Assembly: GCA_950097015.1 (NCBI GenBank)
Contig: CATNEN010000038.1
Span: 15,686,001-15,750,000, forward strand
DNA: 64,000 bases
Reading direction: 5' to 3'
Origin: Macrostomum hystrix
Taxonomy: Eukaryota > Animalia > Platyhelminthes
Made by a program: the position numbers and the translations under genes. The notes below the pieces were generated by a model. That model saw nothing but the letters and a program-made list of their open reading frames with translations, searched no databases and was not told where the DNA came from. Positions 9,501-36,403 of the stretch are shown piece after piece; the first letter of the stretch is position 1, and each line of letters starts with the position of its first letter.

Positions 9501-12500
9501 AGACAGTAGATGGATGAGACAGTGGATAGATGAGACAGTGGATAGATGAGACAGTGGAGAGATGAGACAGTAGATAGATGAGACAGTAGATAGATGAGAC
9601 AGTGGATAGATGAGACAGTGGAGAGATGAGACAGTGGATAGATGAGACAGTGGATAGATGAGACAGTGGATAGATGAGACAGTGGAGAGATGAGACAGTG
9701 GAGAGATGAGACAGTGGAGAGATGAGACAGTGGAGAGATGAGATAGTGGAGAGATGAGACAGTAGATAGATGAGACAGTGGAGAGATGAGACAGTGGATA
9801 GATGAGACAGTGGATAGATAAGACAGTAGATAGATGAGACCGTGGATAGATGAGACAGTAGATGGATGAGACAGTGGAGAGATGAGACAGTGGATAGATA
9901 AGACAGTAGATTGATGAGACCGTGGATAGATGAGACAGTAGATGGATGAGACAGTGGAGAGATGAGACAGTGGAGAGATGAGACAGTGGAGAGATGAGAC
10001 AGTGGAGAGATGAGACACTAGATAGATGAGACAGTGGAGAGATGAGACAGTGGAGAGATGAGACAGTGGAGAGATGCAACAGTAGATAGATGAGACAGTA
10101 GGTGGATTAGACAGTGGAGAGATGAGACAGTGGATAGATGAGACACTAGATAGATGAGACAGTGGATAGATGAGACAGTGGATAGATGAGACAGTGGAGA
10201 GATGAGACAGTGGATAGATGAGACAGTGGAGAGATGAGACAGTGGATAGATGAGACAGTAGATGGATCAGACAGTGGATAGATGACACAGTGGATAGATG
10301 AGACACTAGATAGATGAGACAGTGGATAGATGAGACAGTGGATAGATGAGACAGTGGATAGATGAGACAGTGGATAGATGAGACACTAGATAGATGAGAC
10401 AGTGGATAGATGAGACAGTGGATAGATGAGACAGTAGATAGATGAGACCGTGGATAGATGAGACAGTAGATGGATGAGACAGTGGAGAGATGAGACAGTG
10501 GAGAGATGAGACAGTGGAGAGATGAGACAGTGGAGAGATGAGACAGTGGAGAGATGAGACAGTGGAGAGATGAGACAGTGGAGAGATGAGACAGTGGAGA
10601 GATGAGACAGTGGAGAGATGAGCCAGTAGATAGATGACACAGTGGATAGATGAGACAGTGGATAGATGAGACAGTGGATAGATGAGACAGTGGATAGATG
10701 AGACAGTAGATAGATGAGACAGTAGATAGATGAGACAGTGGATAGATGAGACAGTAGATAGATGAGACAGTGGATAGATGAGACAGTGGAGAGATGAGAC
10801 AGTGGATAGAAGAGACAGTAGATAGATGAGACAATGGATAGATGAGACAGTGGATAGATGAGACAGTGGATAGATGAGACAGTGGATAGATGAGACAGTA
10901 GATAGATGAGACAGTAGATAGATGAGACAGTAGATAGATGAGACAGTAGATAGATGAGCCAGTAGATAGATGACACAGTGGATAGATGAGACAGTGGATA
11001 GATGAGACAGTAGATAGATGAGCCAGTAGATAGATGAGACAGTGGATAGATGAGACAGTAGATAGATGAGACAGTGGATAGATGAGACAGTGGAGAGATG
11101 AGACAGTGGAGAGATGAGACAGTAGATGGATCAGACAGTGGATAGATGAGACAGTAGATAGATGAGACACTAGATAGATGAGACAGTGGATAGATGAGAC
11201 AGTGGATAGATGAGACAGTGGAGAGATGAGACAGTGGATAGATGAGACAGTGGAGAGATGAGACAGTGGATAGATGAGACAGTAGATGGATCAGACAGTG
11301 GATAGATGAGACAGTAGATAGATGAGACACTAGATAGATGAGACAGTGGATAGATGAGACAGTAGATAGATGAGACACTAGATAGATGAGACAGTGGATA
11401 GATGAGACAGTGGATAGATGAGACAGTGGAGAGATGAGACAGTGGATAGATGAGACAGTGGAGAGATGAGACAGTGGATAGATGAGACAGTAGATGGATC
11501 AGACAGTGGATAGATGAGACAGTAGATAGATGAGACACTAGATAGATGAGACAGTGGATAGATGAGACAGTGGATAGATGAGACAGTGGATAGATGAGAC
11601 AGTGGATAGATGAGACACTAGATAGATGAGACAGTGGATAGATGAGACAGTGGATAGATGAGACAGTAGATAGATGAGACCGTGGATAGATGAGACAGTA
11701 GATGGATGAGACAGTGGAGAGATGAGACAGTGGAGAGATGAGACAGTGGAGAGATGAGACAGTGGAGAGATGAGACAGTGGAGAGATGAGACAGTGGAGA
11801 GATGAGACAGTGGAGAGATGAGACAGTGGAGAGATGAGACAGTGGAGAGATGAGCCAGTAGATAGATGACACAGTGGATAGATGAGACAGTGGATAGATG
11901 AGACAGTGGATAGATGAGACAGTGGATAGATGAGACAGTAGATAGATGAGACAGTAGATAGATGAGACAGTGGATAGATGAGACAGTAGATAGATGAGAC
12001 AGTGGATAGATGAGACAGTGGAGAGATGAGACAGTGGATAGAAGAGACAGTAGATAGATGAGACAATGGATAGATGAGACAGTGGATAGATGAGACAGTG
12101 GATAGATGAGACAGTGGATAGATGAGACAGTAGATAGATGAGACAGTAGATAGATGAGACAGTAGATAGATGAGACAGTAGATAGATGAGCCAGTAGATA
12201 GATGACACAGTGGATAGATGAGACAGTGGATAGATGAGACAGTAGATAGATGAGCCAGTAGATAGATGAGACAGTGGATAGATGAGACAGTAGATAGATG
12301 AGACAGTGGATAGATGAGACAGTGGAGAGATGAGACAGTGGAGAGATGAGACAGTAGATGGATCAGACAGTGGATAGATGAGACAGTAGATAGATGAGAC
12401 ACTAGATAGATGAGACAGTGGATAGATGAGACAGTGGATAGATGAGACAGTGGAGAGATGAGACAGTGGATAGATGAGACAGTGGAGAGATGAGACAGTG

Positions 12501-14515
12501 GATAGATGAGACAGTAGATGGATCAGACAGTGGATAGATGAGACAGTAGATAGATGAGACACTAGATAGATGAGACAGTGGATAGATGAGACAGTGGATA
12601 GATGAGACAGTGGATAGATGAGACAGTGGATAGATGAGACACTAGATTGATGAGACAGTGGATAGATGAGACAGTGGATAGATGAGACAGTAGATAGATG
12701 AGACCGTGGATAGATGAGACAGTAGATGGATGAGACAGTGGAGAGATGAGACAGTGGAGAGATGAGACAGTGGAGAGATGAGACAGTGGAGAGATGAGAC
12801 AGTGGAGAGATGAGACAGTGGAGAGATGAGACAGTGGAGAGATGAGACAGTGGAGAGATGAGACAGTGGAGAGATGAGCCAGTAGATAGATGACACAGTG
12901 GATAGATGAGACAGTGGATAGATGAGACAGTGGATAGATGAGACAGTGGATAGATGAGACAGTAGATAGATGAGACAGTAGATAGATGAGACAGTGGATA
13001 GATGAGACAGTAGATAGATGAGACAGTGGATAGATGAGACAGTGGAGAGATGAGACAGTGGATAGATGAGACAGTAGATGGATGAGACAGTGGATAGATG
13101 AGACAGTAGATAGATGAGACACTAGATAGATGAGACAGTGGATAGATGAGACAGTGGTTAGATGAGACAGTGGATAGATGAGACAGTGGAGAGATGAGAC
13201 AGTGGAGAGATGAGACAGTAGATAGATGAGACAGTAGATGGATGAGACAGTGGAGAGATGAGCCAGTAGATAGATGAGACAGTAGATAGATGAGACAATG
13301 GATAGATGAGACAGTGGATAGATGAGACAGTGGATAGATGAGACAGTGGATAGATGAGACAGTAGATAGATGAGACAGTAGATAGATGAGACAGTAGATA
13401 GATGAGACAGTAGATAGATGAGCCAGTAGATAGATGACACAGTGGATAGATGAGACAGTGGATAGATGAGACAGTAGATAGATGAGCCAGTAGATAGATG
13501 AGACAGTGGATAGATGAGACAGTAGATAGATGAGACAGTGGATAGATGAGACAGTGGAGAGATGAGACAGTGGAGAGATGAGACAGTAGATGGATCAGAC
13601 AGTGGATAGATGAGACAGTAGATAGATGAGACACTAGATAGATGAGACAGTGGATAGATGAGACAGTGGATAGATGAGACAGTGGAGAGATGAGACAGTG
13701 GATAGATGAGACAGTGGAGAGATGAGACAGTGGATAGATGAGACAGTAGATGGATCAGACAGTGGATAGATGAGACAGTAGATAGATGAGACACTAGATA
13801 GATGAGACAGTGGATAGATGAGACAGTAGATAGATGAGACAGTGGATAGATGAGACAGTGGAGAGATGAGACAGTGGATAGATGAGACAGTAGATGGATG
13901 AGACAGTGGATAGATGAGACAGTAGATAGATGAGACACTAGATAGATGAGACAGTGGATAGATGAGACAGTGGATAGATGAGACAGTGGATAGATGAGAC
14001 AGTGGAGAGATGAGACAGTGGAGAGATGAGACAGTAGATAGATGAGACAGTGGAGAGATGAGACAGTGGAGAGATGAGACAGTGGAGAGATGAGACAGTG
14101 GAGAGATGAGACAGTGGAGAGATGAGACAGTAGATAGATGAGACAGTAGATAGATGAGACAGTGGATAGATGAGACCGTGGATAGATGAGACCGTGGATA
14201 GATGAGACAGTAGATGGATTAGACAGTGGAGAGATGAGACCGTGGATAGATGAGACAGTGGAGAGATGAGACAGTGGAGGGATGAGACAGTGGAGAGATG
14301 AGACAGTGGAGAGATGAGACAGTGGAGAGATGAAACAGTGGAGAGATGAGACAGTAGATAGATGAGACCGTGGATAGATGAGACCGTGGATAGATGAGAC
14401 AGTAGATGGATTAGACAGTGGAGAGATGAGACAGTGGAGAGATGAGACAGTGGAGAGATGAGACAGTGGAGAGATGAGACAGTGGAGAGATGAGACAGTG
14501 GAGAGATGAGACAGG
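590..14515. repeat. 13.9-kb tandem satellite, 16-nt unit GATGAGACAGT(G/A)GA(G/T)A, with higher-order structure
   Basis: Unit is directly visible. GATGAGAC starts at 633 and at 14457/14505, all in the same mod-16 phase (about 867 monomers). Rare marker variants recur at multiples of 16. Confidence 0.99.
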
Positions 14516-14954
14516 GTAGATATGAGCAGGAGAAATATGGTGCAGGGTTGTTATTTACTGCTGTCCTGCTCCACAGCTTTGGCAATCAAACCCTGGTCTC
14601 ACAGAGCTGTTCATGAAAGCCATGAACTCTTCATCATCTGTCAATGGCACAGTCGGTTGGAGGCAAAGACAAAATAATGGGCTCAAAATGAGCTGCTCAT
14701 TTGGAAACTGAGAACAGCTGTCTCAATATGTGCCTGCGGTTGGTCTCAATTACAATACGAGTAAGCTGCAACTCTCCGATGGAGTTCGCTACTGGCGTCG
14801 ATTTCAATAGAACTAAAGGCGCCATACGCTGTGGTAATCTGGCAGTAATTTACGTTGCAAATATATTGCACAAAGCGATACAACTGCTTCAACAAAAAAC
14901 TGCTTTTTCTCTCTGATTGTTTTGACTCTGCTTACATTGGGTCGGCTAAGTGCG

Positions 14955-15124: not shown

Positions 15125-18100
15125 ATGAATAGTAACGGCATGGATAGTAACGGCATGAATAGTAACGGCATTATTATTTACGAGAAGCCATTTCGGAGGC
15201 CGCGACGTTGGGCTAGAAGAAGTAGATGCACTAGCGAGAAACTCTGTGTACTTCAAAAAGTTTTATATTCGATTTTACTAATAGTTGCTGTTATAGACAT
15301 TGCGGTCATCTACAAGCTGTTGCTGTCTTGTCAGCAAGAAATCGTGAGTTCATTTTAGATGCTTTTCGATTTTCAGTTTGCGTGCGCAATATGATAACTG
15401 ATTGTTTCTGTGTGTGAAATCTGGAATCGAATCCCGGACCTTTAAGTGGTGATTCCGACGCTCAACCTCTTTTTATACATAACAATTAATATATATATAT
15501 TACTTACAATCCACTGTTAGCAGTCATTCTAAAATTTTTGTCGAATAATCTTACTGCCTGCTAAGTGACGTATTAAAGACAGAGGAGACATGACGGGAGA
15601 GATGAGACATGCGAGAAATACTGGGAGAGATGAGACATGAGAGAAATAATGGGAGAGACGAGACATGCGAGAAACAATGGGAGAGATGAGACATGGGAGA
15701 AATAATGGGAGAGATGAGACATGCGAGAAACAATGGGAGAGATGAGACATGGGAGAAACAATGGGAGAGATGAGACATGGGAGAAATAATGGGAGAGATG
15801 AGACATGCGAGAAACAATGGGAGAGATGAGACATGCGAGAAACAATGGGAGAGATGAGACATGGGAGAAATAATGGGAGAGATGAGACATGCGAGAAACA
15901 ATGGGAGAGATGAGACATGGGAGAAATAATGGGAGAGATGAGACATGCGAGAAACAATGGGAGAGATGAGACATGGGAGAAATACTGGGAGAGATGAGAC
16001 ATGGGAGAAATAATGGGAGAGATGAGACATGGGAGAAATAATGGGAGAGATGAGACATGCGAGAAATACTGGGAGAGATGAGACATGAGAGAAATAATGG
16101 GAGAGACGAGACATGCGAGAAACAATGGGAGAGATGAGACATGGGAGAAATAATGGGAGAGATGAGACATGCGAGAAACAATGGGAGAGATGAGACATGG
16201 GAGAAATAATGGGAGAGATGAGACATGGGAGAAATAATGTGAGAGACGACGGGAGAGATGATACATAGGAGAGAGGAGAAATTGAGAGACGAGATGTAAA
16301 GTGTAGAGATGTGACATAAAAGAGATGAGACAAAGGAGAGACGAGACAGTTGAGAGATTAGATTGTGGAGAGATAAGACATTTAAGTTAAGAACCAAATG
16401 TAAAATTCGTATGAGTTAAAATTCTTAGAATTGTCTGACAGCTAATTTCGTGAGTTAGCTCGTAATACTAACGACTATGTCTTTGAGCTGCTCAAACCGA
16501 GCTCAACTTGGTACTCTGAATACTCGCAGTTCACATTCACGAGTCGCACAAGAAAAAATTACAATGCCCAGCAGAGAGACTTTGCTTTTGGCTTGTCACA
16601 CCACAACCCTATTTAACTTAAGGCTAAAAAGTGGCGTCGCAAACTGTTTAACCATATTAGGTAAGACGCCCGTTTGACAAGTAGAATTAAAAAACTTGAC
16701 ATTGTACTAAGTACTGAGTTATTAAAATTTTATTTACCACGGAGTACTTACTTTTTGCAGTTTTTTAGAATTAAAAGCATTTTTTACGGCTTGCAAATGT
16801 AGTTGGTAATAGCAATGTGTAATAGAAATTACCAATATTACCAATTACCAATTACCAATTACCAATTACCAATTACCAATTACCAATTACCAAATACCAA
16901 TCTTACCAATTACCAATTACCAATTACCAATTACCAATTACCAATTACCAATTACCAATATTACCAATTACCAATATTACCAATTACTAATTACCAATAT
17001 TACCAATATTACCAATTACCAATTACCAATTACCAATTACCAGTTACCAATATTACCAATTACCAATTACCAATTACCCACATTTTCTCTTTTTCTTCTG
17101 TATCTTCTAAAATATTCTGCTCATCGACATAAATATCCAAAACACAGGCTAAAACTTTCCACTCTATACCATGAGAAAGCTTCCACAGTCACAAACAATC
17201 GGCATCGTCAGATATTCAAGGATTTTCGTCGGGGTGTCTTGTGGCGAAAAACCTCAAAATAGATATAATGTAGGCTTTATTGTTGATTATACTGCTGAGC
17301 CAATGTTGGAACTCGGTAAAAATTTCGCTAACTCTTTCATAGGTCAGTAATGAGACTGTTGTGCACCGAAAATGTGACGCGAATTGTTCCATTCCAATGA
17401 CTCCCCGCACTTGCAACGTGTCCTAGGTACAGCTGCGCTTGAATAGCCGAAATATGACCGATTGTCCGAGTGAAACGAAGGAAAACTGCAAGACCGAGAA
17501 AAATATGATCAAATATCATGGCAAAGGAAACCGTAGGTTATTATTTCTCTTCTTCTTTCACTGATTCCCTACTCATAGAACATTGTAACTAGCGCAAGCA
17601 AAGCTTGTAGAAACCGACGTTCGCATCGGCCCGTTCATCTGCGAGCCGCAGGAAGAATGCAACAAGATGATTGTTCTCAGCTCTGATGGATCTGCTGTGC
17701 GCGTGACAAAAGCGATGGAGCTGAGAATTTGGGGCATGGTAAAACTATAATGATCATTTTTGTTTTCACTGCATTCCAGTCTCCTTTTACTCAGAAGTAT
17801 GGGCTGTGATTAGGGGGGGGGGTGGCAGAGCGGTCTGACGTGTTTGCCTCTCGCACCAACGTCCCTAAGCTCGATTCCGCGGCGAGGCCACATTTATTTG
17901 GGTGCAGTCGCAGAGTGATGGTTTGATTTACGCCCTTGAGGGCCAGCCTCCAAGGCACAGTGGCAGTGTACACTGACGGACGATGAGAAAGTCAAGGCAG
18001 ATGAAGACACCTGTGAGAGCGTATGCCTGCGTACAGTATCTGTGAGCGCGTGTGCTCAGGAGTCAGCGAAATGGGCAGAAATGCCTCCACGCTGGCTGCG

Positions 18101-18678
18101 GGTCTATAGTGTGTCATCAAATGATGCTCCATTGCCCGCAGCCCTCCTGCAGTTATTATTATTATTAAGGGCTGTGATTTGGCAGTGGTTCCATTCCACG
18201 GCGATTGTCGTGCGATTTGCGCTCATAAGGACCAACCTCCCCAGAGGCACAAAAGTAGCATGTCAGTCGTACTTTAGTTAATCCAATCTATCCAACCAGT
18301 GATAGCTGGTCTAGAAGGTCTCGTGCCCCAGTCCCTGGACTGTATAGCTGAGCGCCTTTTAGGTACGTCGATGAGTGATTCAAAGACTGCAGACGGCCTT
18401 CCACTGAATTTGATTAGCAACCTCACGTGCCACCTTTGTAGGTGCGATTTGTTAGCAAAAACAGTCAAAGATTTACAGTCAAACTAAAGGCTAATAATGG
18501 CACCTTTAACGAAAGCCATTGGAAGATGAGCGAAGGAGATAATGCAACTTTTCCGGTAGTCGCCATCGCCTCACTAAAAGAAGGCGACATTTTATCAATG
18601 GAGCTGAATATGAAAGATGGGTACAATTTGGACGCATCGGCCGATGAGACTGAAATTAAGATTGACTTTAGGTATTAA
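15125..18678 (+). CDS. TNF-superfamily-like type II membrane protein, paralog 1 (spliced, about 229 aa)
   Basis: Exons 15125-15343 (TM VLYSILLIVAVIDIAVIYKLLL, donor ATC|gtgagt), 17427-17532, 17611-17738 and 18442-18678. All introns are GT-AG with compatible phases 0/1/0. A possible extra exon lies at 17189-17269. The C-terminus IASLKEGDILSMEL resembles TNF-family strands F-G (BAFF IAKLEEGDELQL). Exons align one-to-one with the gene at 27558. Confidence 0.75.
15420..15470 (-). mobile_element. SINE family A, tRNA-head fragment
   Basis: Reverse complement matches the head of the copy at 24976 (GCGTCGGA.TCAC.ACTT.AAGGTC...TTCGATTCC). Confidence 0.65.
15585..16375. repeat. Minisatellite, 28-nt unit GGGAGAGATGAGACATG(G/C)GAGAAA(T/C)AAT, degenerate at the right end; intronic
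   Basis: Unit is directly visible and shares the GAGAGATGAGACA core with the 16-mer arrays. Confidence 0.97.
16826..17078. repeat. Microsatellite (TTACCAA)n with 9-nt TATTACCAA variants; intronic
   Basis: Directly visible. Confidence 0.97.
17811..18168 (+). mobile_element. SINE family B (tRNA-derived), full-length copy in the last intron of TNF-like paralog 1
   Basis: A-box-like TGGCAGAGCGG, B-box-like GCTCGATTCC, a body shared with four other copies in the window, and a (TTA)n tail. Confidence 0.8.
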
Positions 18679-18744
18679 TAATACCATCAGATTTGAGTTG
18701 TGCGACTTCAGAAGGTTGACTCAATTTAACGCCCTGCGAGCTAA

Positions 18745-20160
18745 AGGGAGATGAGATCAGACAGGAGAGATGAGAACAGTGGACAGATGAGACTGGGGAG
18801 AGATAAGTCTGGGAGAGATGAGACAGGGGAGAGAAGAGACAGTGGACAGATGAGACAGAGGAGAGATGAGACAGGGGAGGGAGAGATGAGACAGGGGAGA
18901 GATGAGACATTGGAGAGATGAGACATTGGAGAGATGAGACAGGGGAGAGATGAGAAATTGGAGAGATGAGACATTGGAGAGATGAGACAGGGGAGAGATG
19001 AGACAGGGGAGAGATGAGACATTGGAGAGATGAGACATTGGAGAGATGAGACAGGGGAGAGATGAGACAGGGGAGAGATGAGACATTAGAGAGATGAGAC
19101 AGGGGAGAGATGAGACATTGGAGAGATGAGACATTGGAGAGATGAGACAGGGGAGAGATGAGACATTGGAGAGATGAGACAGGGGAGGGAGAGATGAGAC
19201 AGGGGAGAGATGAGACAGGGGAGAGATGAGACATTAGAGAGATGAGACAAGGGAGAGATGAGACATTAGAGAGATGAGACAGGGGAGAGATGAGACATTG
19301 GAGAGATGAGACATTGGAGAGATGAGACAGGGGAGAGATGAGACATTGGAGAGATGAGACAGGGGAGGGAGAGATGAGACAGGGGAGAGATGAGACATTG
19401 GAGAGATGAGACATTGGAGAGATGAGACAGGGGAGAGATGAGACAGGGGAGAGATGAGACAGGGGAGAGATGAGACAGGGGAGAGATGAGACAGGGGAGA
19501 GATGAGACAGGGGAGAGATGAGACAGGGGAGAGATGAGACAGGGGAGGGAGAGATGAGACAGGGGAGAGATGAGACATTGGAGAGATGAGACATTGGAGA
19601 GATGAGACATTGGAGAGATGAGACAGGGGAGAGATGAGACATTGGAGAGATGAGACATTGGAGAGATGAGACATTGGAGAGATGAGACAGGGGAGAGATG
19701 AGACATTGGAGAGATGAGACATTGGAGAGATCAGACAGGGGAGAGATGAGACATTGGAGAGATGAGACAGGGGAGGGAGAGATGAGACAGGGGAGAGATG
19801 AGACATTGGAGAGATGAGACATTGGAGAGATGAGACAGGGGAGAGATGAGACATTGGAGAGATGAGACATTGGAGAGATGAGACATTGGAGAGATGAGAC
19901 ATTGGAGAGATGAGACAGGGGAGAGATGAGACAGGGGAGAGATGAGACAGGGGAGAGATGAGACAGGGGAGAGATGAGACATTGGAGAGATGAGACATTG
20001 GAGAGATGAGACAGGGGAGAGATGAGACAGGGGAGAGATGAGACAGGGGAGAGATGAGACAGGGGAGAGATGAGACATTGGAGAGATGAGACAGGGGAGA
20101 GATGAGACAGGGGAGAGATGAGACAGGGGAGAGATGAGACAGGGGAGAGATGAGACAGGG
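18745..20160. repeat. Satellite, 16-nt unit GAGAGATGAGACA(GGG/TTG) with occasional 20-nt variants
   Basis: Directly visible; starts about 65 nt after the paralog 1 stop codon. Confidence 0.98.
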
Positions 20161-20702
20161 CAGAAAGTGTCCATACGTTCGGCTTAGTTACTCTCTCAAG
20201 AAATACACCTATTTATCATTTGAAATAGTTTTTCGCATATTGTTTCCCTTGTTGCAAATAATTAACTAGCTGTGTGTGGTGTATATTTGGTTTTTATAAA
20301 TAAGATTTAGTTTTATTTTTCGTTTATAGAATTTATAGTTTTGCTATCACTTGCACCCAGAACATTTTCAGCAAAGATAAAAGATTTGTTTTTCTAAATT
20401 ATTGTTTCTACAGATAATTTCATTTCTTGCCATGTACTCAGAGCATATACTTAAGCTGCTAGACATTAATTTTCTTGTTAGATTAGTCGCGATAGTGTAC
20501 ACCATGTCATCAAGCCACTGCTGCAACTATTGACTTGTCGCTTTAGTATTGATATTGTGTAAAAGTAATATGAGTTACATAAATATAAATTTGCCTACAT
20601 GCATCGTTGTACATGTAAATTTTTTTTTAATACAAAAAACAAGAAGGACAACTGTCATTATCTTCTACAAGCGTATAATCACGTTATTTAGTATGCTCTT
20701 CA

Positions 20703-21452
20703 AAGGCTCCTCCGAGGATTTGAGAGGCTCCACCGAGGATTTGGGAGGCTCCACTGAGGATTTGGGGCATAATTGAGGATTTGGGAGGCTCCACCGAGGA
20801 TTTGGGGGCTCCACTGAGGATTTGGGAGGCTCCACTGAGGATTTGGGGCACAATCGAGGATTTGGGGCACAATCGAGGATTTGGGGCACAATCGAGGATT
20901 TGGGGCACAATCGAGGATTTGGGGCACAATCGATCGAGGATTTGGGGCACAATCGATCGAGGATTTGGGGCACAATCGATCGAGGATTTGGGGCACAATC
21001 GATCGAGGATTTGGGGCACAATCGAGGATTTGGGGCACAATCGATCGAGGATTTGGGGCACAATCGAGGATTTGGGGCACAATCGAGGATTTGGGGCACA
21101 ATCGAGGATTTGGGGCACAATCGAGGATTTGGGGCACAATCGATCGAGGATTTGGGGCACAATCGAGGATTTGGGGCACAATCGATCGAGGATTTGGGGC
21201 ACAATCGAGGATTTGGGGCACAATCGAGGATTTGGGGCACAATCGAGGATTTGGGGCACAATCGAGGATTTGGGGCACAATCGATCGAGGATTTGGGGCA
21301 CAATCGAGGATTTGGGGCACAATCGAGGATTTGGGAGGCTCCACTGAGGATTTAAGAGGCTCCACCGAGGATTTGGAAGGCTACAGCGTGGATTTGGGGC
21401 ACAATCGAGGATTTGAGAGGCTCCAGCGAGGATTTGGGAGGCTTCTCTGAGG
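20703..21452. repeat. Minisatellite, 19/23-nt unit GAGGATTTGGGGCACAATC(GATC), flanked on both sides by 21-nt GAGGATTTGGGAGGCTCCACT units
   Basis: Directly visible. Confidence 0.97.
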
Positions 21453-22033
21453 ATCAGCTGGGGTTATTGTGGGTTGGTGTGGCGTATTTTCAGTCCATGG
21501 ACTCGGGTGTGAGTAATATAATTTACTTGGCTACAACCATTTTTAGAATGGCGCTGCTAAATTGTCTGTCTGTCTACGGGAGGACTCCCATTGAGGTTGG
21601 TCAGGCCTGCACACAGCGCTGCTTCTGGTGCATTAGACCTTAAAACCCAGTGGCACTGTTATTGACTCACCGCGCGCCTCGCCATGATGTGAATACTGTC
21701 ATAAAAACTTTCATGAAAATAAAACTTGTTTGCGTTTTTCACTCGCCACGCAGCTCGTATTTCATTTCTCGAGGCACCCCGGGTTTCGTCTGTGAAAGCT
21801 TTTATTTCGTATGGAGTTATTAGAACCTAATTTTGAATGGCATTTTGAAGGGTCGGCTAAGGGAAACAAGGTAATGAGGCAGTTTTAATATGAACACTGC
21901 TCACTTATTTTATTATACTCGTGGTATAAAAATTAATGAAGCAGAGAAGTATGTGCTATTGTCTGTACAGGAGTATAGTGGCTGGTTATAACGTCATTCG
22001 AACAGGCAAGGCAATTGTGCTCATTTCGTTAAG

Positions 22034-22130
22034 TCCTGAGCGCACAGGTGTGTACATCTGCACCGACTTTCTCATCGTCAGGCAGTGTACACTGTCACTG
22101 CGTTGGAGATCGGCCCTCAAGGGCGTAAAT
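22034..22130 (-). mobile_element. SINE family B internal fragment
   Basis: CACAGGTGTGTACATCTGC...GACTTTCTCATCGTCAGGCAGTGTACAC...GGGCGTAAA is shared with 26905-27000 and 28705-28790. Confidence 0.75.
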
Positions 22131-22152
22131 TGCGTAAATTGTAAAGGGCGTA

Positions 22153-23097
22153 AGTGCTGGGGGAACAGGGAGTAGAGCTGGTGCTGGGGAACAGGGGGTA
22201 GACCTGGTGCTGGGGGAACAGGGGGTAGAGCTGGTGCTGGGGGAACAGGGAGTAGAGCTGGTGCTGGGGAACAGGGGGTAGACCTGGTGCTGGGGGAACA
22301 GGGGGTAGAGCTGGTGCTGGGGGAACTGGGGGTAGAGCTGGTGCTGAAGGAACAGGTGGTGCTGGGGGAACAGGGGGTAGAGCTGGTGCTGGGGGAACAG
22401 GGAGTAGAGCTGGTGCTGGGGAACAGGGGGTAGACCTGGTGCTGGGGGAACAGGGGGTAGAGCTGGTGCTGGGGGAACAGGGGGTAGAGCTGGTGCTGAA
22501 GGAACAGGTGGTGCTGGGGGAACAGGGAGTAGAGCTGGTGCTGGGGGAACAGGGGGTAGACCTGGTGCTGGGGGAACAGGGGGTAGAGCTGGTGCTGGGG
22601 GAACAGGGGGTAGAGCTGGTGCTGAAGGAACAGGTGGTGCTGGGGGAACAGGGAGTAGAGCTGGTGCTGGGGGAACAGGGGGTAGAGCTGGTGCTGGGGG
22701 AACAGGGGGTAGAGCTGGTGCTGGGGGAACAGGGGGTAGAGCTGGTGCTGGGGGAACAGGGGGTAGAGCTGGTGCTGGGGGAACAGGGGGTAGAGCTGGT
22801 GCTGGGGGAACAGGGGGTAGAGCTGGTGCTGGGGGAACTGGGGGTAGAGCTGGTGCTGAAGGAACAGGTGGTGCTGGGGGAACAGGGGGTAGAGCTGGTG
22901 CTGGGGGAACAGGGGGTAGAGCTGGTGCTGGGGGAACAGGGGGTAGAGCTGGTGCTGGGGGAACAGGGGGTAGAGCTGGTGCTGGGGGAACAGGGGGTAG
23001 AGCTGGTGCTGGGGGAACAGGGGGTAGAGCTGGTGCTGGGGGAACAGGGGGTAGAGCTGGTGCTGGGGGAACAGGGAGTAGGGTTGGTGCTGGAGAA
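22153..23097. repeat. G-rich minisatellite, 27-nt unit GTGCTGGGGGAACAGGGGGTAGAGCTG
   Basis: Directly visible; explains the [12 protein letters not shown]. Confidence 0.98.
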
Positions 23098-23504
23098 ATA
23101 AGAGACAGGACAGTTGTCTTCTGTAGTTACTTGCTAGACCTTAAGTCGAAGACTAACCAGTGCGAGCGTATCCAACGAGTACGAGCTATCCAACTCTGAC
23201 TATGACTCATACAGCTTCTGATAACTTGGTATTGTTTACCAGGCTGTCTTGAGCTGTTGTAACGGTGCAAGTCGTACTAACAATAGTATGGAATTTAGAG
23301 CATCTCACAAATATGAGAAACTTTAAGAAACATCGCCCTCATTTTAAGTTAAGAGACATTTTATGCACCTTACTTATATTGTACTCGTAAGTTGTTTACG
23401 TCATTAGGCAAACAGACGAATACTACTCACTGCGAATATGCACATACAAATAAAACAAAAAAATAAATTAAAATCTTACTATATACCGTGCTCTCAGCAT
23501 GTCC

Positions 23505-23640
23505 TTCAGCCAGTTCAGCCACAGCAGTTAAAGTTGCTTCAGACAAATCAGCAGCGGAACCAGGACACCTAGAGGGTCATAGATCTGGTGGCATAAACTT
23601 TAGCGCAAACATGTCCGTGCCGGTTTCCCATCGCGATCCG
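23505..23640 (-). mobile_element. Degenerate BEL/Pao LTR-retrotransposon pol fragment
   Basis: The minus strand reads GSRWETGTDMF and then, after a frameshift, QIYDPLGVLVPLLICLKQL*LLW. These match the BEL/Pao motifs LGxxWxxxxDxF and IYDPLGxxxP...KxLxQxLW. Confidence 0.55.
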
Positions 23641-23839
23641 CGTATATCTCTTTGGAAAATTTGTCAACGAATTGTGCGTTTTGCTCTCGGTGAGAAGCAA
23701 GATGGTAACAAATATACAATTTTAACCACAAAGAGCAAATATGCACCAGACAGGCACCTGCGAAAAACCAAAGCAATTAGAAATGATTGATAGGTAGACA
23801 AAACTAAGCAACACTTAAGGACAACTTCCTGACATTTTC

Positions 23840-24177
23840 TGCCCTGTCTCATCCTCCAATGTCTCATCTCTCACCGGTTTATCTCATCTGTCCACGGACC
23901 ACTGTCTCATCTTTCAACTGTTCTCATCTCTCCCCTGTCTCATCTCTCCCCTGTCTCATCTCTCCCCTGTCTCATCTCTCCCCTGTCTCATCTCTCCCAG
24001 ACTTATCTCTCCCCTGTCTCATCTCTCCCCTGTCTCATCTCTCCCCTGTCTCATCTCTCCCCTGTCTCATCTGTCCACTGTCTCTTCTCTCCCCTGTCTC
24101 ATCTCTCCCAGACTTATCTCTCCCCAGTCTCATCTGTCCACTGTTCTCATCTCTCCCGTCTGATCTCATCTCCCTTT
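23840..24177. repeat. 16-nt satellite, reverse complement of the 18745-20160 array (short version)
   Basis: CTGTCTCATCTCTCCC units with the same diagnostic boundary variants as 18745-18860. Confidence 0.95.
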
Positions 24178-24241
24178 AGCTCGCAGGGCGTTAAATTGAG
24201 TCAACCTTCTGAAGTCGCACAACTCAAATCGGATGGTATTA

Positions 24242-24477
24242 TTAATACCTAAAGTCAATCTTAATTTCACTCTCATCGGCCGATGCGTCCAAATTGTACC
24301 CATCTTCCATATTCAGCTCCATTGATAAAATGTCGCCTTCTTTTAGTGAGGCGATGGCGACTACCGGAAAGTTGCATTATCTCCTTCGCTCATCTTCCAA
24401 TGGCTTTCGTTAAAGGTGCCATTATTAGCCTTTAGTTTGACTGTAAATCTTTGACTGTTTTCGCTCGCAAATAGCAC
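24242..24477 (-). pseudogene. Inverted, frameshifted copy of the last exon of TNF-like paralog 1
   Basis: Near-identical reverse complement of 18442-18678 but 236 vs 237 nt. The T-run of 3 instead of 4 at about 24368-24370 gives ACT TTC CGG TAG. No copies of the upstream coding exons were seen. Confidence 0.8.
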
Positions 24478-24975
24478 CTACAAAGGTGGCACGGAGGTAC
24501 AAATGTAGCACGTGAGGTTGCTAATCAAATTCAGTGGAAGGCCGTCTGCAGTCTTCCATCTTCCATCCAGTCAGCAACTGGATGGAAATGACGCAATCGC
24601 TTCAACAGCGGCTGTTAGAAAAATCAAATAGAAAGGACAACCGGAACGCTGCGGCCTCCGCAATCGCTTCTCCTGAAAGGTTATGCTTGTAAACTTCATA
24701 GCGTTCTGTGCAAGCACCGCTATGAACTTTCACTGTTTGCAGCACTCGATCAGTGGCCCCTCTACAACTGTCTGCGTCAGCATTTTTATCGGGCAAGAAG
24801 CTGCATTCTGACAGCCCTGTACTCGTAGTCTGTTGTGGGTTGGCATGCGAAACGGGAACTAAGAGATCACGTGATAAGCCTTATTAGCCACAGCATGCAG
24901 TTGGCAGACCCTAACACGGTCAAAACAACGAGGGAAATGTATTTTTAGATTGATAGATTTTATATTTAGAAGACA

Positions 24976-25278
24976 GAGGTTGTAGCCTAGTGGTTAGGGC
25001 GTCGGACTCACGACTTGAAGGTCGGGGGTTCGATTCCCGACTCCACTGGAACAATTTGCGTCCTTTAGCAAGACACTTAACTCTGCATTGCTTCAGTTCA
25101 CCCAGCTGTTAAATGGGTACCAGCATCAGCTGGGATAATTGAAGGTGGGTGTGGCGTCCCCCCAGTCCATGGACTGAACAGCTGTACGCAGCCTTCAGAT
25201 GCGCCGCGCATTAGCTGCGGCTGTGCTGTCGGCTGCACATCTGACCCAATTGGGGCAGGTGTAATCAATTAATTTATT
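24976..25278 (+). mobile_element. SINE family A, full-length tRNA-derived CORE-like SINE
   Basis: A box TAGCCTAGTGG, B box GGTTCGATTCC, a central segment resembling the MIR/CORE domain, an AT-rich tail, and a 13-bp TSD TATTTAGAAGACA (24963-24975 and 25279-25291). Confidence 0.9.
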
Positions 25279-26062
25279 TATTTAGAAGACACTTCCCTTC
25301 CCGCTGCGGGAAGTGTCTTGCTCCCGAACAGCTCACGGCTGGTGGATTGTACCTGCTTCCACCAAGCGCTACTTCAGCTGTCTTACGATAGGTCATGCAC
25401 TAAATCTTGCTATCACGAGAAGCAGTGTAACTTTTCCGCGATTCTATTCGCGGATGGAGAGAAGACCTTAAAGTCCACGATCAGCGAACGGGATGAAGGA
25501 CGAATGAAACCTGAGCAGTCGGTCGCAAAGGGTTTCAAGAATCAAGAAGTAATGACAATGGCGATGGTGTAAAAAGACTCAAGCACTGATTCTTCACTGC
25601 TTCTGGAGCTTCTGGAGCCTGTGGTAGCCGTCAGACATGGGTTCGAATCCTCTTAGACTCTGCCAGCAACCGATCATTCATTTTAACCAGTTCGGCTGAG
25701 CGGATGGGTCTCGGTGTCATTGGCAAGGAGACAATGGAGGTGACTACATCTGGCGAGACAGAATCTAGAGTACTGCAGATCGAGAAGGACTTGAATTTCA
25801 ACTTCGGAGGCTCTGTGACGGCGCCCTGTTTAACTTGCAGGCCAACACGGTGCCCCACATTTGCGCCACTTCTAGAGACTGTGATTCAACATATAGAATT
25901 TAGTGCCCATTGTCACTTTCCACTTGTTGCCAGTGTATGTGCTGCGCAGTCGCAGATTTAAAAGTTATTTTTTTCTGCTTGTTTCGAAAGAGATTTTAAT
26001 TTCTTGCCATGTACTCAAAGTAAATACTAAAAGTCAAGCTACTCATTCATTTTCTGAGCACA

Positions 26063-26838
26063 GCAGTCAGATGTCGTGCAGGCAGTTGTCGAGCAGGCAG
26101 TTGTCGTGCTGGCAGTTGTCGTGCATTCAGTTGTCGTGCTGGCAGTTGTCGTGCATTCAGTTGTCGTGCTGGCAGTTGTCGTGCATTCAGTTGTCGTGCT
26201 GGCAGTTGTCGTGCATTCAGTTGTCGTGCTGGCAGTTGTCGTGGATTCAGTTGTCGTGCTGGCAGTTGTCGTGCAGGCAGTTGTCGTGCAGGCAGTTGTC
26301 GTGCTGGCAGTTGTGGTGCAGTCAGTTGTGGTGCTGGCAGTTGTGGTGCAGTCAGTTGTGGTGCTGGCAGTTGTCGTGCATTCAGTTGTCGTGCTGGCAG
26401 TTGTCGTGCATTCAGTTGTCGTGCTGGCAGTTGTCGTGCAGGCAGTTGTCGTGCATTCAGTTGTCGTGCTGGCAGTTGTGGTGCAGGCAGTTGTCGTGCA
26501 TTCAGTTGTCGTGCTGGCAGTTGTGGTGCAGGCAGTTGTCGTGCTGGCAGTTGTGGTGCAGTCAGTTGTCGTGCTGGCAGTTGTGGTGCAGGCAGTTGTG
26601 GTGCAGTCAGTTGTGGTGCTGGCAGTTGTGGTGCAGTCAGCTGTGGTGCAGGCAGTTGTCGTGCAGGCAGTTGTGGTGCAGGCAGTTGTGGTGCAGGCAG
26701 TTGTGGTGCAGGCAGTTGTGGTGCAGGCAGTTGTGGTGCAGGCAGTTGTGGTGCAGGCAGTTGTGGTGCAGGCAGTTGTGGTGCAGGCAGTTGTGGTGCA
26801 GGCAGTTGTGGTGCAGGCAGTTGTGGTGCAGGCAGTTG
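26063..26838. repeat. Minisatellite, 15-nt unit CAGTTGT(C/G)GTGC(AGG/TGG/ATT/AGT)
   Basis: Directly visible; variants change in a gradient along the array. Confidence 0.97.
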
Positions 26839-26845
26839 GTAGCAG

Positions 26846-27110
26846 GTAGACCCGCAGCCAGCGAGGACGCAATTCTGACCATTACGCTGACTCCTGAGAA
26901 CACGCTTACACAGGTGTGTACATCTGCCCTGACTTTCTCATTGTCAGGCAGTGTACACTTTACTGTGCCTTGGAGGTTGGCCACTAAGGGCGTAAATTGC
27001 CTTCTCTCAAGCCTTCTCTCCGCGGCTGCGCCCCAATTTAACGTGGCCTCGCCGTGGAATCGTTGCGAGAGGCAAACGCGTTAGCTGCTCTGCCACTTGA
27101 CCCCCTAGGC
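26846..27110 (-). mobile_element. SINE family B copy, 3' tail replaced by minisatellite
   Basis: Reverse complement matches the head and body of 17811-18107. Confidence 0.8.
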
Positions 27111-27557
27111 GACACCGTATCCTTGGAGTCGAATTCGGAAGATGGATATAATTTTACTAGAATTCAGATGAAGGACGAGGTATGAAAAAAAGAAATAAAA
27201 ATGAAAAATGCACTGGCTCCAACCCTTTAACTTTCTTGTATAGAAAATTCCATTATACAGTTTGAGTCGCTTTTCAACCTTATGAGCACGTACATGTTTA
27301 GCTCACGCTTTTCTAATTTTGGGTAAGCACGGTTTCGAAGGCGTACAGTTTTACAACAAGGTACTTACGTCGATATTATTGGCGAATGTACACATACAGA
27401 CAAATGTACAGATGTACATGGGTATTCTCTAGTCAGGAATATGTACGAGCTCGCTCCGAACATGGAACTATGAGCTTGACTGACGCAAGCAGTATAAGCA
27501 AAGCAATAAATACAAACAAAAGTTTCATTCTAGAAGTCTAGAAGTCTCAAACCGAAC

Positions 27558-29124
27558 ATGGAGCTAAGTACTGTCTCCGACACGCTCCATAGACCCGTAT
27601 CTAAAGCCGCGGATGACGAGCAAACGGAAATATTACCCTTAAATCAAACAGAGACTACTGACAAAGAGCAAAATGAAAATCAACTTTTAGACAATGAAGA
27701 CCAACTGGGACAATCTACTGCTGAGCGCGCACTCTCTGGAGAAGATAGAATACATATTTTTCGTTCGACAGTGGTCCTGATCGGTATTGTTGTCATTGTA
27801 TTACTCGCTTTAATCTTGTGGCTATTATTCAGCCGTCTACCTGAGCAACAGCTGGCAGCTTCAGCAACAGTACCATCGACTAACACGACGGCCAACGATC
27901 CAACAGCCGGCACTCCGACTGGGAAACCCGACCCGATACCGAACGACGGCCAAAATCAGGTAAAAATGACGTCCATAGATCGTATACGAGCTCGTAATAA
28001 CGCTAAGAATGACTGTTAACAACATATTCGTATTTTCCAATCGAATGCAAATCCGTAGCGTATAATTTTTTGTTCACACCTAATATGCATGACAATATTT
28101 TATTTTCTTTTGTGAGAGTAAACACGTGAGGAATTTAACAAAATTGGCATTGCAGGCAGCCTTCTCCCTCGTGATTGATAAAAATCGCTTGCCCGATTGC
28201 CCTAAAAATGATGCCATCACTGAGACCTGTGCTAATCCAAAAAGCACTTTGATCACTATGAAAGGAGACAGCCAGCGTAAGCTTGTGACTATATATACTT
28301 ACTCTACTACAGAATAGCTTGATTAAAACAGTGGCTGGATTATTTGATTTCATTTCGCATTGCAGACCGTCTGATCCTGGGCCCTTTCGCTTGCCAATCG
28401 GACAGCAGAAATATATGCGATAGGATGCTAAGCGTTGGCAACCAAGTGTTCGTTAAACAAACCATGAGGTGCAAAATTTCAGCTCAGGTAATTAAATTTA
28501 TTGCAAGTCGATTCTAAGAAGCCATGCTTTATTGCGATGAACGGCTGTGCGACCCGCAACCAGCGAGTAGGCGAATGGACTTAATCCACCAGCCTACACT
28601 GGTCCGGAAATGGGGGTTTGGCTGGGATTTGTCTCACCAGTTTCTAGATTCAGAGCTCAATGCCTGAGCACAAGCGCACACAGATACCGTACGCAGGCAC
28701 ACACTCACAGGTGTGTACATCTGGCCATACTTTCTCATCGTCAGGCAGTGTACACACCCACTGTGCCTTGGAGGTTGGCCCATGTGCGCCCTAAATGAAT
28801 GCGGATTCGAGCTCAGGCACTTCGCCACTCTATCCTACATACAAAGTGCTTTTTCTCAATTCACAGGTAACGCTTAGGTCGAGGAGTAAGCATCGGCTAC
28901 CGATTGCGCTGCAGCTGAAAGTGAACAAAAATCGATTCCAGGGGGTCCGTGCCGTACTGGACGAAGATCCGGTGACTCTGCTCATTAGCGTCATTGCAGA
29001 TCGTCAACTGATGAAGGGCGACACAGTGTCCCTGGAGCTAATCTCCAACTCGGAAATGGCCACGGATGTAGATGTGGACAGGATGGAGTCCGTCACTCAT
29101 ATCGGACTGTCCTGCTTCTTTTGA
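27558..29124 (+). CDS. TNF-superfamily-like type II membrane protein, paralog 2 (spliced, 300 aa)
   Basis: Exons 27558-27959 (TM STVVLIGIVVIVLLALILWLLFS plus a Ser/Thr/Pro stalk, donor CAG|gtaaaa), 28156-28276, 28366-28487 and 28867-29124. Introns are GT-AG with phases 0/1/0, joining into one open frame. MLSVGNQVFVKQTMRCKISAQ|VTLR parallels TNF [37 protein letters not shown] parallels QLEKGDRLSAEI, and THIGL parallels VYFGI. Confidence 0.82.
28551..28830 (-). mobile_element. SINE family B copy in the last intron of TNF-like paralog 2
   Basis: Reverse complement of the family B body, with a contracted head (GAGTGGCGAAG...GAGCTCGAATCC). Confidence 0.75.
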
Positions 29125-29857
29125 TTATTTAACTGCAGTTAGTCTTGTGAACAGATTATTTTCTGAAAAAAAAATAATGTGCCATAAAAGCCATCCAAAT
29201 TAGAAATTTTTTTTCGATTTGATCAACACAAAAATCGGATAGAAAGAATTGTTACATTGTTAATTGTTATTGAAAAATACTTCAAAATCAATCAATAAAG
29301 CGTCACAATCGTGAATTAAAAACTGGCTTATTGTATCGTCTTGATTTGACCAATCGAATAGCAGATTTTGTGACTTTTATTAAAACACAAGATGTTTTAA
29401 TAAAAGTGGCAGATTGTGGCAGATTGTGGCAGATAATCAATCTGCGTGGCAGATTGACAACTCGAAACATAAAATAAACAGCGAATAAAATTTTTATTGA
29501 ACATAGACGCTAATGAAAGCAAAATTAATTTTTCATTTAAAAAACATTAATTGTTCGATTTTTAATTTATAAATCTACTACTGAGAGTAAGCATCATCGC
29601 TTGTTGTTGACAGTTTTTTATCCAAAATCGTAAAAAGACACAAAACTTCTAATAAATCAAAACCAGATTGAACAGAAAAGACAATATGCCAAATCGTCTG
29701 TATCTTTATTGTAAAAAATTAGTCTCGACTATAAAATATTGCATAAAAAAGGTTTCACTAAGTCTAAACCTATGTAGAATCTGTTTATTAACCTCAAACT
29801 AAATCCTCTTGTGGACAAACGTAAGTAGTCTTCCAGACAGTTTAATTCGATAAAAAA

Positions 29858-30706
29858 TCAATCGGCACCCGTTGGTTTTGGCACGGTGCTGTGATGCCGG
29901 TGAGATTTCACGCCACCGCTGCCGCTGCGGCCAAGAGACGACGTTGAAAACGACGTAGCCGCATCCTCCGCAGCCACTTCGTTATCGTCGCCGCGATCGA
30001 GGGAAGCTTCGACTTCGTGACTAGCGGCGGTACCGGCGGTGGCCGCGGCGGCGGCGGCGCTGTCAGCGGCGGTGACTCGACTGTGCTGACGACTGTGCTG
30101 CCGCATTTGCTGTTGCTGCTGCTGCTTGGCAGATGCTGCCTGGTGCTGCTTCTGCGAACGAATAGCCGTTGAACCGTCGCCAATTGCCGTAGAAGACGAG
30201 GCACTGCGGCGAGACAGCACCAAAGAGTGAATGCCAAACGCCAAGAAGGCTAGGAGAAGGACACCATCGACAGCGTACACCAGAGTGATCTGGGACAGGT
30301 AGGACGGCATGCTGTACACCTTGAGTGTGGCACTGGCATTGAACTGTCTGCCAGGCACTGAGCAGGTGTATTCGCCTGAATCGTGTGGAGTCAAATGAAT
30401 CGCAGTCAATGTGCCATTAACGGCGCTAATATTGGACTCCAGCCAGTTCCAGTATTCAATCTGGGTGCCATTGGGAAAGTACCAGATTAATTCGCTAGAG
30501 GTGTAATTGGCAGCCAAATGCTGGGACAGGTGGCAAGCTACGGTGGTGTTGCTGCCAGTAAGGAGTGACTGCTGATACGGCTCGGTGGACAGGGGCGGCT
30601 GCTCTTCCTCGGGTACGCTAGCCACGGTGGCAAACCGCTGAGCTAGAAACAGGACGCACATCAGCAGCGGCAGCAGCTGCCGGGTCAGCTGGCAAGCGAA
30701 GATCAT
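29858..30706 (-). CDS. Single Ig-domain type I membrane protein, paralog 1 (282 aa)
   Basis: ATG at 30706 follows the acceptor TTTTCCAG. The protein has a signal peptide, an Ig domain (VAC...LIWY...DSGEYTC), the TM ITLVYAVDGVLLLAFLAFGI and a low-complexity Q/A/S cytoplasmic tail. Confidence 0.88.
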   Translation of the reverse strand: MIFACQLTRQLLPLLMCVLFLAQRFATVASVPEEEQPPLSTEPYQQSLLTGSNTTVACHLSQHLAANYTSSELIWYFPNGTQIEYWNWLESNISAVNGTLTAIHLTPHDSGEYTCSVPGRQFNASATLKVYSMPSYLSQITLVYAVDGVLLLAFLAFGIHSLVLSRRSASSSTAIGDGSTAIRSQKQHQAASAKQQQQQQMRQHSRQHSRVTAADSAAAAAATAGTAASHEVEASLDRGDDNEVAAEDAATSFSTSSLGRSGSGGVKSHRHHSTVPKPTGAD

Positions 30707-30776
30707 CGGAGCTGGAAAACAATATTCAATAAAATGATGATAAAATGAATGAGTTGCGATCGTGTTGGAAGCCCAC

Positions 30777-31090
30777 ATAGGGTGAGTGGCAGAGCAGTCT
30801 AACGCGTTTGCCACTCGCACCAGGTCACTGAGCTCGATTCCGCGTCAAGGCCATGCACATTCATTTGGGAGATAAGGCTTGCGGGCTCGTCGTGCGCCCA
30901 TGAGAAAGTCAGGGCAGACGTACACACATCTGTGAGTGTGCGCCCGCGTACGGACGGTATCTGTGTGCGTGTGTTCTGAGGAGTCAGCGGAATGGGCAGA
31001 ATTGCCTCCTCGCTGGCTGCGGGTCTACAGTCACCAAATGATGTGCCATTGCATGGACACAACCATTCTGCTTATATTATTAATTATTAG
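30777..31090 (+). mobile_element. SINE family B copy
   Basis: Head GTGGCAGAGCAGTCTAACGCGTTTGCC...GAGCTCGATTCC, shared body and an ATT-rich tail. Confidence 0.8.
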
Positions 31091-31119
31091 AAGCGCGCAA
31101 TTATTTACTATTTTAAATG

Positions 31120-31385
31120 AGGTCTTAGTCATCACGGAGCCTGGCCTGCAGGTTGGGAGTTCGAATCTCAGCCTAGGAGAAACCACGTGTGTCCTGAAGC
31201 AAAGCAGAAAAAATTCCCACCCCATTAGTTCACTTAATCATTAAACAGCTGTCAGCATTGGCTGGGGTAGCTCGGGTGGGTGTGGTGCCCTCCTGCACAG
31301 TCCGCGGACTGAACGGGTGTACACAGCGCCACGTAGTAGCTGCGACTGGGCCACTGGCTGTACAAGTGGTCCAATTGGGTTAGGG
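31120..31385 (+). mobile_element. Diverged SINE family A copy
   Basis: B-box GAGTTCGAATCT; GGTGGGTGTGG...CAGTCC.(T/C)GGACTGAAC...CCAATTGGG is shared with 25145-25255. Confidence 0.65.
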
Positions 31386-31682
31386 GTGAAATTTCTTATC
31401 TTATCAAAAGCTAGAGAAATGTAAAGAGTAAGCGATAGTCTAGGAAAAAAAGAATTTTGAAACCGGACAAACACAGGCCAGTCAGATCATAAATCAATCA
31501 AATTTATTACTATTTTATATTTCTATCGACTGCTTAGAGGAATCAACTCAAAAAAAGTTTCTGGCTATAGGTTTTATGAGCTCATTAGTTTCCGTCAGCT
31601 TTTAATTGTGCCTCGAAACTTCAAATTTTATTAAATGAACTGTTTTAAAATATACTTTTGTTGTTTACAAATGTGCAAAAAA

Positions 31683-32625
31683 CTCCCTCTCAGATTCTCA
31701 GGTAGGATCGCCTCCCTCTCAGATCCTCAGGTAGGGTCGCCTCCCTCTCATATCCTCAGGTAGGGTCGCCTCCCTCTCAGATCCTCAGGTAGGGTCACCT
31801 CCCTCTCATATCCTCAGGTAGGGTCGCCTCCCTCTCAGATCCTCAGGTAGGGTCACCTCCCTCTCATATCCTCAGGTAGGGTCGCCTCCCTCTCATATCC
31901 TCAGGTAGGGTCACCTCCCTCTCAGATCCTCAGGTAGGATCGCCTCCTTCTCAGATCCTCAGGTAGGGTCACCTCCCTCTCAGATCCTCAGGTAGGATCG
32001 CCTCCCTCTCAGATCCTCGGGTAGGATCGCCTCCCTCTCAGATCCTCGGGTAGGGTCGCCTCCCTCTCAGATCCTCGGGTAGGATCGCCTCCCTCTCAGA
32101 TCCTGAGGGTAGGGTCGCCTCCCTCAGATCCTGAGGGTAGGATCGCCTCCCTCTTAGATCCTGAGGGTAGGATCGCCTCTCAGATCCTCAGGTAGGGTCG
32201 CCTCCCTCTCAGATTCTCAGGTAGGATCGCCTCCCTCTCAGATCCTCATGTAGGGTCGCCTCCCTCTCAGATCCTGAGGGTAGGGTCGCCTCCCTCTCAG
32301 ATCCTCGGGTAGGGTCGCCTCCCTCTCAGATCCTCGGGTAGGATCGCCTCCCTCTCAGATCCTGAGGGTAGGGTCGCCTCCCTCAGATCCTGAGGGTAGG
32401 ATCGCCTCCCTCTTAGATCCTGAGGGTAGGATCGCCTCTCAGATCCTCAGGTAGGGTCGCCTCCCTCTCAGATTCTCAGGTAGGATCGCCTCCCTCTCAG
32501 ATCCTCATGTAGGGTCGCCTCCCTCTCAGATCCTGAGGGTAGGGTCGCCTCCCTCAGATCCTGAGGGTAGGATCGCCTCCCTCTCAGATCCTCAGGTAGG
32601 ACGCCCAATCTGTCAGATCCTCAGA
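31683..32625. repeat. Minisatellite, 29-nt unit CCTCCCTCTCAGATCCTCAGGTAGG(G/A)TCG
   Basis: Directly visible; inverted partner at 33735-34596. Confidence 0.97.
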
Positions 32626-36230: not shown

Positions 36231-36403
36231 CTATTATAAAAATGTTATAAAAATGCACTAAAATAAGCGACAAATAAAGCTTCCGTTCACCAAAAGAAGA
36301 AAAATGCACCACAAGACTAACTGCAAGCTAAATAAACATAATCGAATATCAACAGGAATTTTGAGCTGCGAAAGCCACAAGTCTAACGTTTTTCTTACTC
36401 GAC

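Follow-up and report, generated by a model that had tools for sequence, protein, structure and literature searches.

Introduction

Free-living flatworms are, to our knowledge, the only platyhelminths that have retained TNF ligands of their own. Such ligands have already been published for Macrostomum lignano, M. tuba and Microdalyellia (Bertevello et al. 2020, PMC7519573), and a preprint places those of M. lignano in a separate cluster (10.1101/2024.07.27.603686). The published flatworm set, 17 sequences in all, was obtained with a Pfam model and BLAST (PMC7519573), and because it was found in this way it holds conservative members only. Here we analyze a stretch of 64,000 nucleotides from Macrostomum hystrix (assembly GCA_950097015.1, contig CATNEN010000038.1, positions 15,686,001 to 15,750,000 of the forward strand), referred to as the window, in which two four-exon genes, G1 and G2, had been predicted. 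We consider it likely that the two are paralogs that lie in tandem, have diverged fast and belong to an expansion of the TNF ligand superfamily specific to flatworms. Unless a contig is named, positions are counted from the first nucleotide of the window.

The published flatworm ligands, exemplified by the M. lignano protein BOX15_Mlig009154g1 (216 amino acids, hereafter P0014), resemble G1 and G2 in having a type II membrane anchor, an LxxGD motif and a C-terminal strand at the stop codon. They also share a three-part ectodomain in which a C...C pair follows the first strand and a GPxxC...C motif precedes the core strands. The motifs DCP...C and GPxxC...C are not confined to G1 and G2, and are the signature of the published family. 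Unlike the published ligands, G1 and G2 are devoid of GxY, TFWG and the last-exon cysteines, and they fall below the Pfam TNF model. Inspected by eye, the 17 sequences represent the types of two other M. hystrix genes (G3 and G0, described below) and one further paralog type, and none of them is of the G1/G2 type.

Among proteins of solved structure, the vertebrate EDA/BAFF/APRIL group provides the best relatives of this paralog family, and G1 and G2 differ from that group in the loss of the last-exon cysteine pair. In the other paralogs this pair may correspond to the disulfide that marks the EDA/BAFF/APRIL group, and we know of no vertebrate ligand in that group with the four extra N-terminal cysteines of G1 and G2. 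Drosophila Eiger, an invertebrate type II TNF ligand, is among the weak structural matches of G2 exon 4 (Z 4.4), and no sequence match between Eiger and G1 or G2 was detectable. G1 and G2 are two extreme additions to a known lineage-specific expansion and not a new kind of system.

Gene structure and membrane topology

Recomputing the coordinates (Table 1) bore out the original prediction of two four-exon genes: all six introns are of the GT..AG type, and the phases are 0/1/0 in both G1 and G2. Exon 1 of each gene encodes one strongly hydrophobic stretch of 19 residues (residues 49-67 in G1, Kyte-Doolittle mean 2.5; mean 3.5 in G2) that is richer in lysine and arginine on its N-terminal side. 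Based on this excess of basic residues both products are type II membrane proteins, as had been proposed. In both proteins the last predicted strand runs almost up to the stop codon, with no more than a few residues between them, which puts the domain at the extreme C-terminus. G1 carries four N-glycosylation sequons in total, in exons 2 and 4. For G1 exon 3 an alternative in-frame acceptor is present at 17611, which the spacing seen in the family favors over the one at 17593; the choice between the two is decidable by RNA alone.

G1 and G2 are approximately 30% identical. The motifs that had been aligned between their exons are present, and the local alignments of exon 3 (z 6.8) and exon 4 (z 7.6) reached scores equaled by none of 2000 shuffles, whereas 42 of 2000 shuffles reached the score of exon 2. 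Kept in both genes are the four N-terminal cysteines, LxxGD and the threonine that opens the last strand.

Relation to TNF ligands

The original prediction described G1 and G2 as a pair, and this pair is not isolated. Immediately upstream of the window, approximately 16 kb from G1 and in tandem with G1 and G2, there is another TNF-ligand gene with four exons, G0, and a dozen or more relatives are found in the genome. G0 has canonical GxY and TFWG, and its exon 3 scored 13.1 bits (sub-threshold) with the Pfam TNF model, which was its sole match. Judged by eye, G0 corresponds to a published M. lignano protein, that of the 0005508 type. Exon 4 of G3, a gene on another contig, likewise matched TNF only, at 11.9 bits. 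A database query with an open frame of G3, left unspliced, returned a single protein, P0014, with 74-77% identity to G3 over exons 3 and 4. The exon boundaries of G3 match P0014, so the predicted G3 junctions are borne out by that protein, and by sequence P0014 is the ortholog of G3.

Several observations place this paralog family among TNF ligands. P0014 scored 31.2 bits with the Pfam TNF model (PF00229), for which the cut-off is 23, and the best 36 matches of P0014 in a phmmer search of the Protein Data Bank consisted entirely of TNF ligands, with BAFF, EDA and APRIL in the lead. A last-exon profile of seven paralogs, from which G1 and G2 had been excluded, found EDA first (E 3e-5), followed by BAFF, APRIL, RANKL and TWEAK; its clear matches in the Protein Data Bank were TNF ligands only, with E values ranging from 3e-5 to 0.02 for EDA, BAFF and APRIL. 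Taken together, the Pfam score, the Protein Data Bank matches and the last-exon profile put the paralog family within the TNF ligand superfamily. A word-based search with P0014 returned nothing but P0014 itself.

G1 and G2 could be connected to this family by profile-profile comparison. With hhalign, the G1+G2 profile of exon 4 aligned to seven paralogs with a score of 27.7 (P 9.8e-5), and that of exon 3 to five paralogs with a score of 24.5 (P 5.4e-5), the latter alignment stopping exactly at the common exon boundary. When the query columns were shuffled, 300 times per exon, the maximum scores were 17.6 for exon 4 and 18.7 for exon 3, and none of the 300 reached the real score. Against P0014 alone, exons 2, 3 and 4 of G1+G2 aligned in order to residues 44-72, 78-128 and 138-192 (P 0.0014, 0.0014 and 0.014), with cysteines opposite cysteines. 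Pairwise local scores point in the same direction: G1 exon 4 gave z 5.0 with a Pfam-positive TNF exon on contig C29, and exons 4 and 3 of G2 gave z 4.7 and z 4.4 with G3. Given these profile-profile and pairwise scores, the identical intron positions and the tandem place beside G0, we regard G1 and G2 as very likely homologous to the TNF ligand family.

Several of our results weigh against this reading. Both proteins lack the G and Y of GxY, which do not vary among the paralogs, the aromatic TFWG/TFFG strand and both of the exon-4 cysteines, a pair that is invariant across seven paralogs. The cysteine pair expected of an EDA/BAFF/APRIL-like ligand in the C-terminal half of the domain is absent from G1 exon 4, and G2 exon 4 has a single cysteine, near its end. 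The TNF hallmarks originally claimed, LxxGD and the C-terminal strand near the stop codon, stand; GxY, whose lack had already been stated, and the aromatic FWG/FFG are absent. Scanned singly with Pfam at E values up to 10, none of the eight G1 and G2 exons gave a TNF match. Leave-out HMMER profiles of the paralogs missed G1 and G2 genome-wide, and within the window they gave just 9 bits (E 0.14) for G2 exon 4. The connection between G1/G2 and TNF ligands consists of profile-profile scores from two-sequence profiles together with transitive homology. In structure searches with a partial model of G2 exon 4, VIA-align against 48,161 chains gave Z values of at most 5.2, inside the noise band of the tool, and Foldseek gave no match at E ≤0.001. 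Finally, support for splicing covers G2 only, the G1 junctions being predicted from sequence.

The blank Pfam and HMMER searches and the structural scores in the noise band could also mean that the likeness to TNF is due to chance, and that G1 and G2 make up an unrelated small family of membrane proteins. We give this explanation next to no credence, as two separate exon profiles beat all 300 shuffles, the matches are correctly ordered and stop at the common exon boundary, the intron positions and phases are identical to those of G0 and G3, and G0 is a tandem neighbor of G1 and G2 with the same orientation. The combination of a blank Pfam scan with a profile-profile link to the paralogs and P0014 agrees with the earlier suggestion that these are TNF-like ligands too divergent for standard annotation.

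Other database searches added little. A HMMER scan of 1.84 billion representative proteins with the two last exons found no relative, self match or ortholog. The scan produced 13 matches. Pfam showed the five examined to be long proteins built of repeats (Ig, PKD, fn3, B3), which sum weak scores; we do not read them as homology. Profiles of G0+G1+G2 had no match in the Protein Data Bank. The same profiles recovered G3 in the genome, which we do not count in favor of G1 and G2 since G0 alone could drive the match. In the ESM Atlas, G2 exon 4 matched unnamed clusters only, with recognition below a useful level.

Fold models and the C1q alternative

The partial model was built from G2 exon 4 alone, using an alignment with nine related rows, and is all-beta with a predicted local distance difference test score (pLDDT) of 65. 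Among the best 50 rows of the VIA-align search, all with noise-band scores, 19 were TNF ligands or C1q-type jelly-roll heads, and 75-78 of the 85 modeled residues could be aligned with BAFF, EDA and APRIL, in each case with the C-terminal half, again with Z values in the noise band. GITRL, BclA and FasL were among the top rows of the Foldseek search, none of them significant. The AlphaFold2 model of P0014, made from a shallow alignment, had a pLDDT of 48 and was too poor for a structure search. The structural matches of the modeled G2 exon 4 are compatible with a TNF ligand and are no proof of one.

The globular heads of C1q and C1qTNF proteins have the same jelly-roll superfold and give comparable weak structural scores, and it might be asked whether G1 and G2 belong with C1q proteins and not with TNF ligands. 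The partial model fits C1q-type heads about as well as TNF ligands (Z 4.3-4.9), and the LxxGD motif is found in both families. A Pfam comparison of TNF (PF00229) and C1q (PF00386) had been suggested as a check; run exon by exon, it favored neither side, as no exon matched C1q any more than TNF. In the Protein Data Bank, however, the paralog profile and P0014 match TNF ligands and no C1q protein. Moreover, G1 and G2 have a type II anchor in place of the signal peptide usual for C1q proteins, and no collagen stalk, and the C1q matches of this genome are located away from G1 and G2. A C1q identity is therefore very improbable.

Splicing of G2 and the possibility of decay

Five public sequencing runs, from two studies, contain window positions 27400-29300, and none of them is recorded as RNA. 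Intron-less contigs of four runs (X1-X4, from the two studies) hold all three G2 junctions, 27959/28156, 28276/28366 and 28487/28867. The contigs span 27487 to past 29300 and omit exactly the three predicted GT..AG introns. Because the genome search found just one G2 exon 4, we consider these contigs to be complementary DNA and not a retrocopy. Run X1 represents a second, closely related organism, in which G2 displays two synonymous and two replacement changes as well as two 3-base insertions. The reading frame has thus been kept.

These data bear on the possibility that G1, G2 or both are decaying copies of TNF ligands, still open and perhaps transcribed, that no longer work as ligands. Several residues invariant among the paralogs are lost in both genes, the locus is unstable as judged by a nearby frameshifted orphan copy of G1 exon 4, RNA support is confined to G2 with none for G1, and searches of the genome and of the protein library turned up no other relative of the G1/G2 type. 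On the other hand, frames are intact over four exons with canonical splice sites in both genes, G2 is spliced in four runs, its indels in the second organism are multiples of three, and the four N-terminal cysteines and LxxGD have been kept at only about 30% identity between G1 and G2. We therefore find decay an unlikely explanation, and continue to favor two diverged members of the TNF ligand family.

Two G2 contigs, of 2541 and 2551 bases, extend approximately 1.4 kb beyond 29300 toward the next gene (29858-36916). The extension could be a long 3' untranslated region or a shared transcript, and the contigs are compatible with either.

Proposed function and implications

In our model G1 and G2 are type II membrane proteins with a short cytoplasmic N-terminus and one anchor, followed in G2 by a Pro/Thr-rich stalk. 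The ectodomain of approximately 160 residues, encoded by exons 2-4, would adopt the beta jelly-roll fold of TNF. If the family is a guide, it may be displayed on the cell surface or shed, and its partner on another cell would be a cysteine-rich receptor similar to those of TNF. Whether the usual trimer is formed is in question, because GxY, the C-terminal TFWG and the exon-4 cysteine pair are lost. It could even be speculated that G1 and G2 are TNF-fold ligands without the canonical trimer core, having another oligomeric state and co-evolving rapidly with a small single-module partner similar to TNF receptors. We think this quite improbable; if true, the abandoned trimer core would make G1 and G2 part of a fast-evolving cell-recognition pair and not a classical cytokine.

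Our results add to the known flatworm repertoire insofar as it reaches genes invisible to standard domain searches, with expression support from G2. Since G1 and G2 escape such searches, the number of TNF ligands in free-living flatworms is underestimated. The two genes also offer a natural example of a TNF homology domain that has drifted while the exon plan and a few anchor residues were kept.

Paralogs and related domains in the genome

Searches of the animal's own genome, with profile and protein queries, covered 220 Mb. Besides G0, at least nine loci are dispersed through the genome (Table 1). In some of these paralogs exons 2+3 or 3+4 are fused into a single exon, and two pairs of paralogs adjoin. 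Further copies of the G1/G2 type were not found in the genome search, apart from the frameshifted orphan exon.

A single-exon C-terminal TNF domain at G000:C29:1307181-1307438 (L005) scored above the Pfam threshold, at 26.1 bits, and has no obvious membership in the cysteine-signature family. Matches to TNFR_c6 are present in the genome, two of them above the cut-off on contig C31, where TNFR_c6 proteins are encoded near 2.00 and 2.35 Mb.

Table 1. Positions of the G1 and G2 gene features, of duplicated sequence in the window and of paralogs elsewhere in the genome.
Feature	Position	Strand	Remarks
G1, whole gene	15125-18678	+	four exons
G1 exon 1: start codon, cytoplasmic tail, membrane anchor	15125..15343 (219 nucleotides, 73 codons, phase-0 end)	+	donor GTGAGT; Arg-rich N-terminal flank
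G1 exon 2: DCP...C motif, one N-glycosylation sequon	17433..17532 (100 nucleotides, phase-1 end)	+	open frame offers no other AG acceptor
G1 exon 3: GPxxC...C motif; strand in which other members of the family have GxY	17593..17738 (146 nucleotides)	+	predicted from sequence and paralog-profile match
G1 exon 4, stop codon included: C-terminal strand, LxxGD motif and three N-glycosylation sequons; free of cysteine	18442..18678	+	
G2, whole gene	27558-29124	+	four exons
G2 5' untranslated region, to contig limit	27487..27557	+	contigs start at 27487, 27521, 27529
G2 exon 1 (coding portion): cytoplasmic tail, acidic; membrane anchor; ~40-residue stalk rich in Pro/Thr	27558..27959	+	
G2 exon 2: first domain strand and DCP...C motif	28156..28276	+	both junctions seen in contigs
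G2 exon 3: GPxxC...C motif, then further strands	28366..28487	+	contigs, profile match
G2 exon 4, stop codon included: C-terminal strand and LxxGD motif	28867..29124	+	contigs, profile match
G2 3' untranslated region	29125..29300, contigs continuing ~1.4 kb past 29300	+	first AATAAA/ATTAAA at 29294
Orphan copy of G1 exon 4, frameshifted (one base missing)	24245..24477	-	no accompanying copies of exons 1-3
Inverted segmental duplication, left arm: G1 exon 4 and 3' flank	18426..18882	.	right arm 24038-24493, 97-98% identity
G0, third four-exon TNF-ligand gene	G000:C38:15680964-15684828 (loci L011, L012)	same as G1	phases 0/1/0
G3 and neighboring paralog	G000:C32:283040-286867 (L022, L029)		
Two paralog loci near C38:22.83 Mb	C38:22830036-22832985 (L028)		
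Paralog	C29:6264584-6265559 (L031)		
Paralog	C39:20781261-20781488 (L032)		
Paralog	C38:16889967-16890350 (L033)		
Weaker paralog matches	C39:13681362; C3:10805628; C7:300960		

Repeats and duplication around the genes

The orphan copy of G1 exon 4 lies within the right arm of the inverted segmental duplication, and it is frameshifted because one base is missing. A brief segment resembling exon 4 (27108-27155, E 0.13) is, by eye, partly repeat sequence and was not counted as a relic of the family.

Arrays with periods of 7-33 bases occupy approximately 40-45% of the window. A family of 16-base minisatellites forms a 14-kb array of about 870 copies (598-14526) between G0 and G1, and recurs in the 3' flank of G1 (18753-20164) and, inverted, in the flank of the orphan exon (23838-24172). 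A dispersed repeat of approximately 120 bases is found at 28663-28781(+), 17940-18060(-), 26909-26982(+), 22043-22116(+) and 30900-30981(-), and sits in introns of both G1 and G2. This repeat is very deep in transcript contigs (bins 28680-28807), presumably owing to copies elsewhere.

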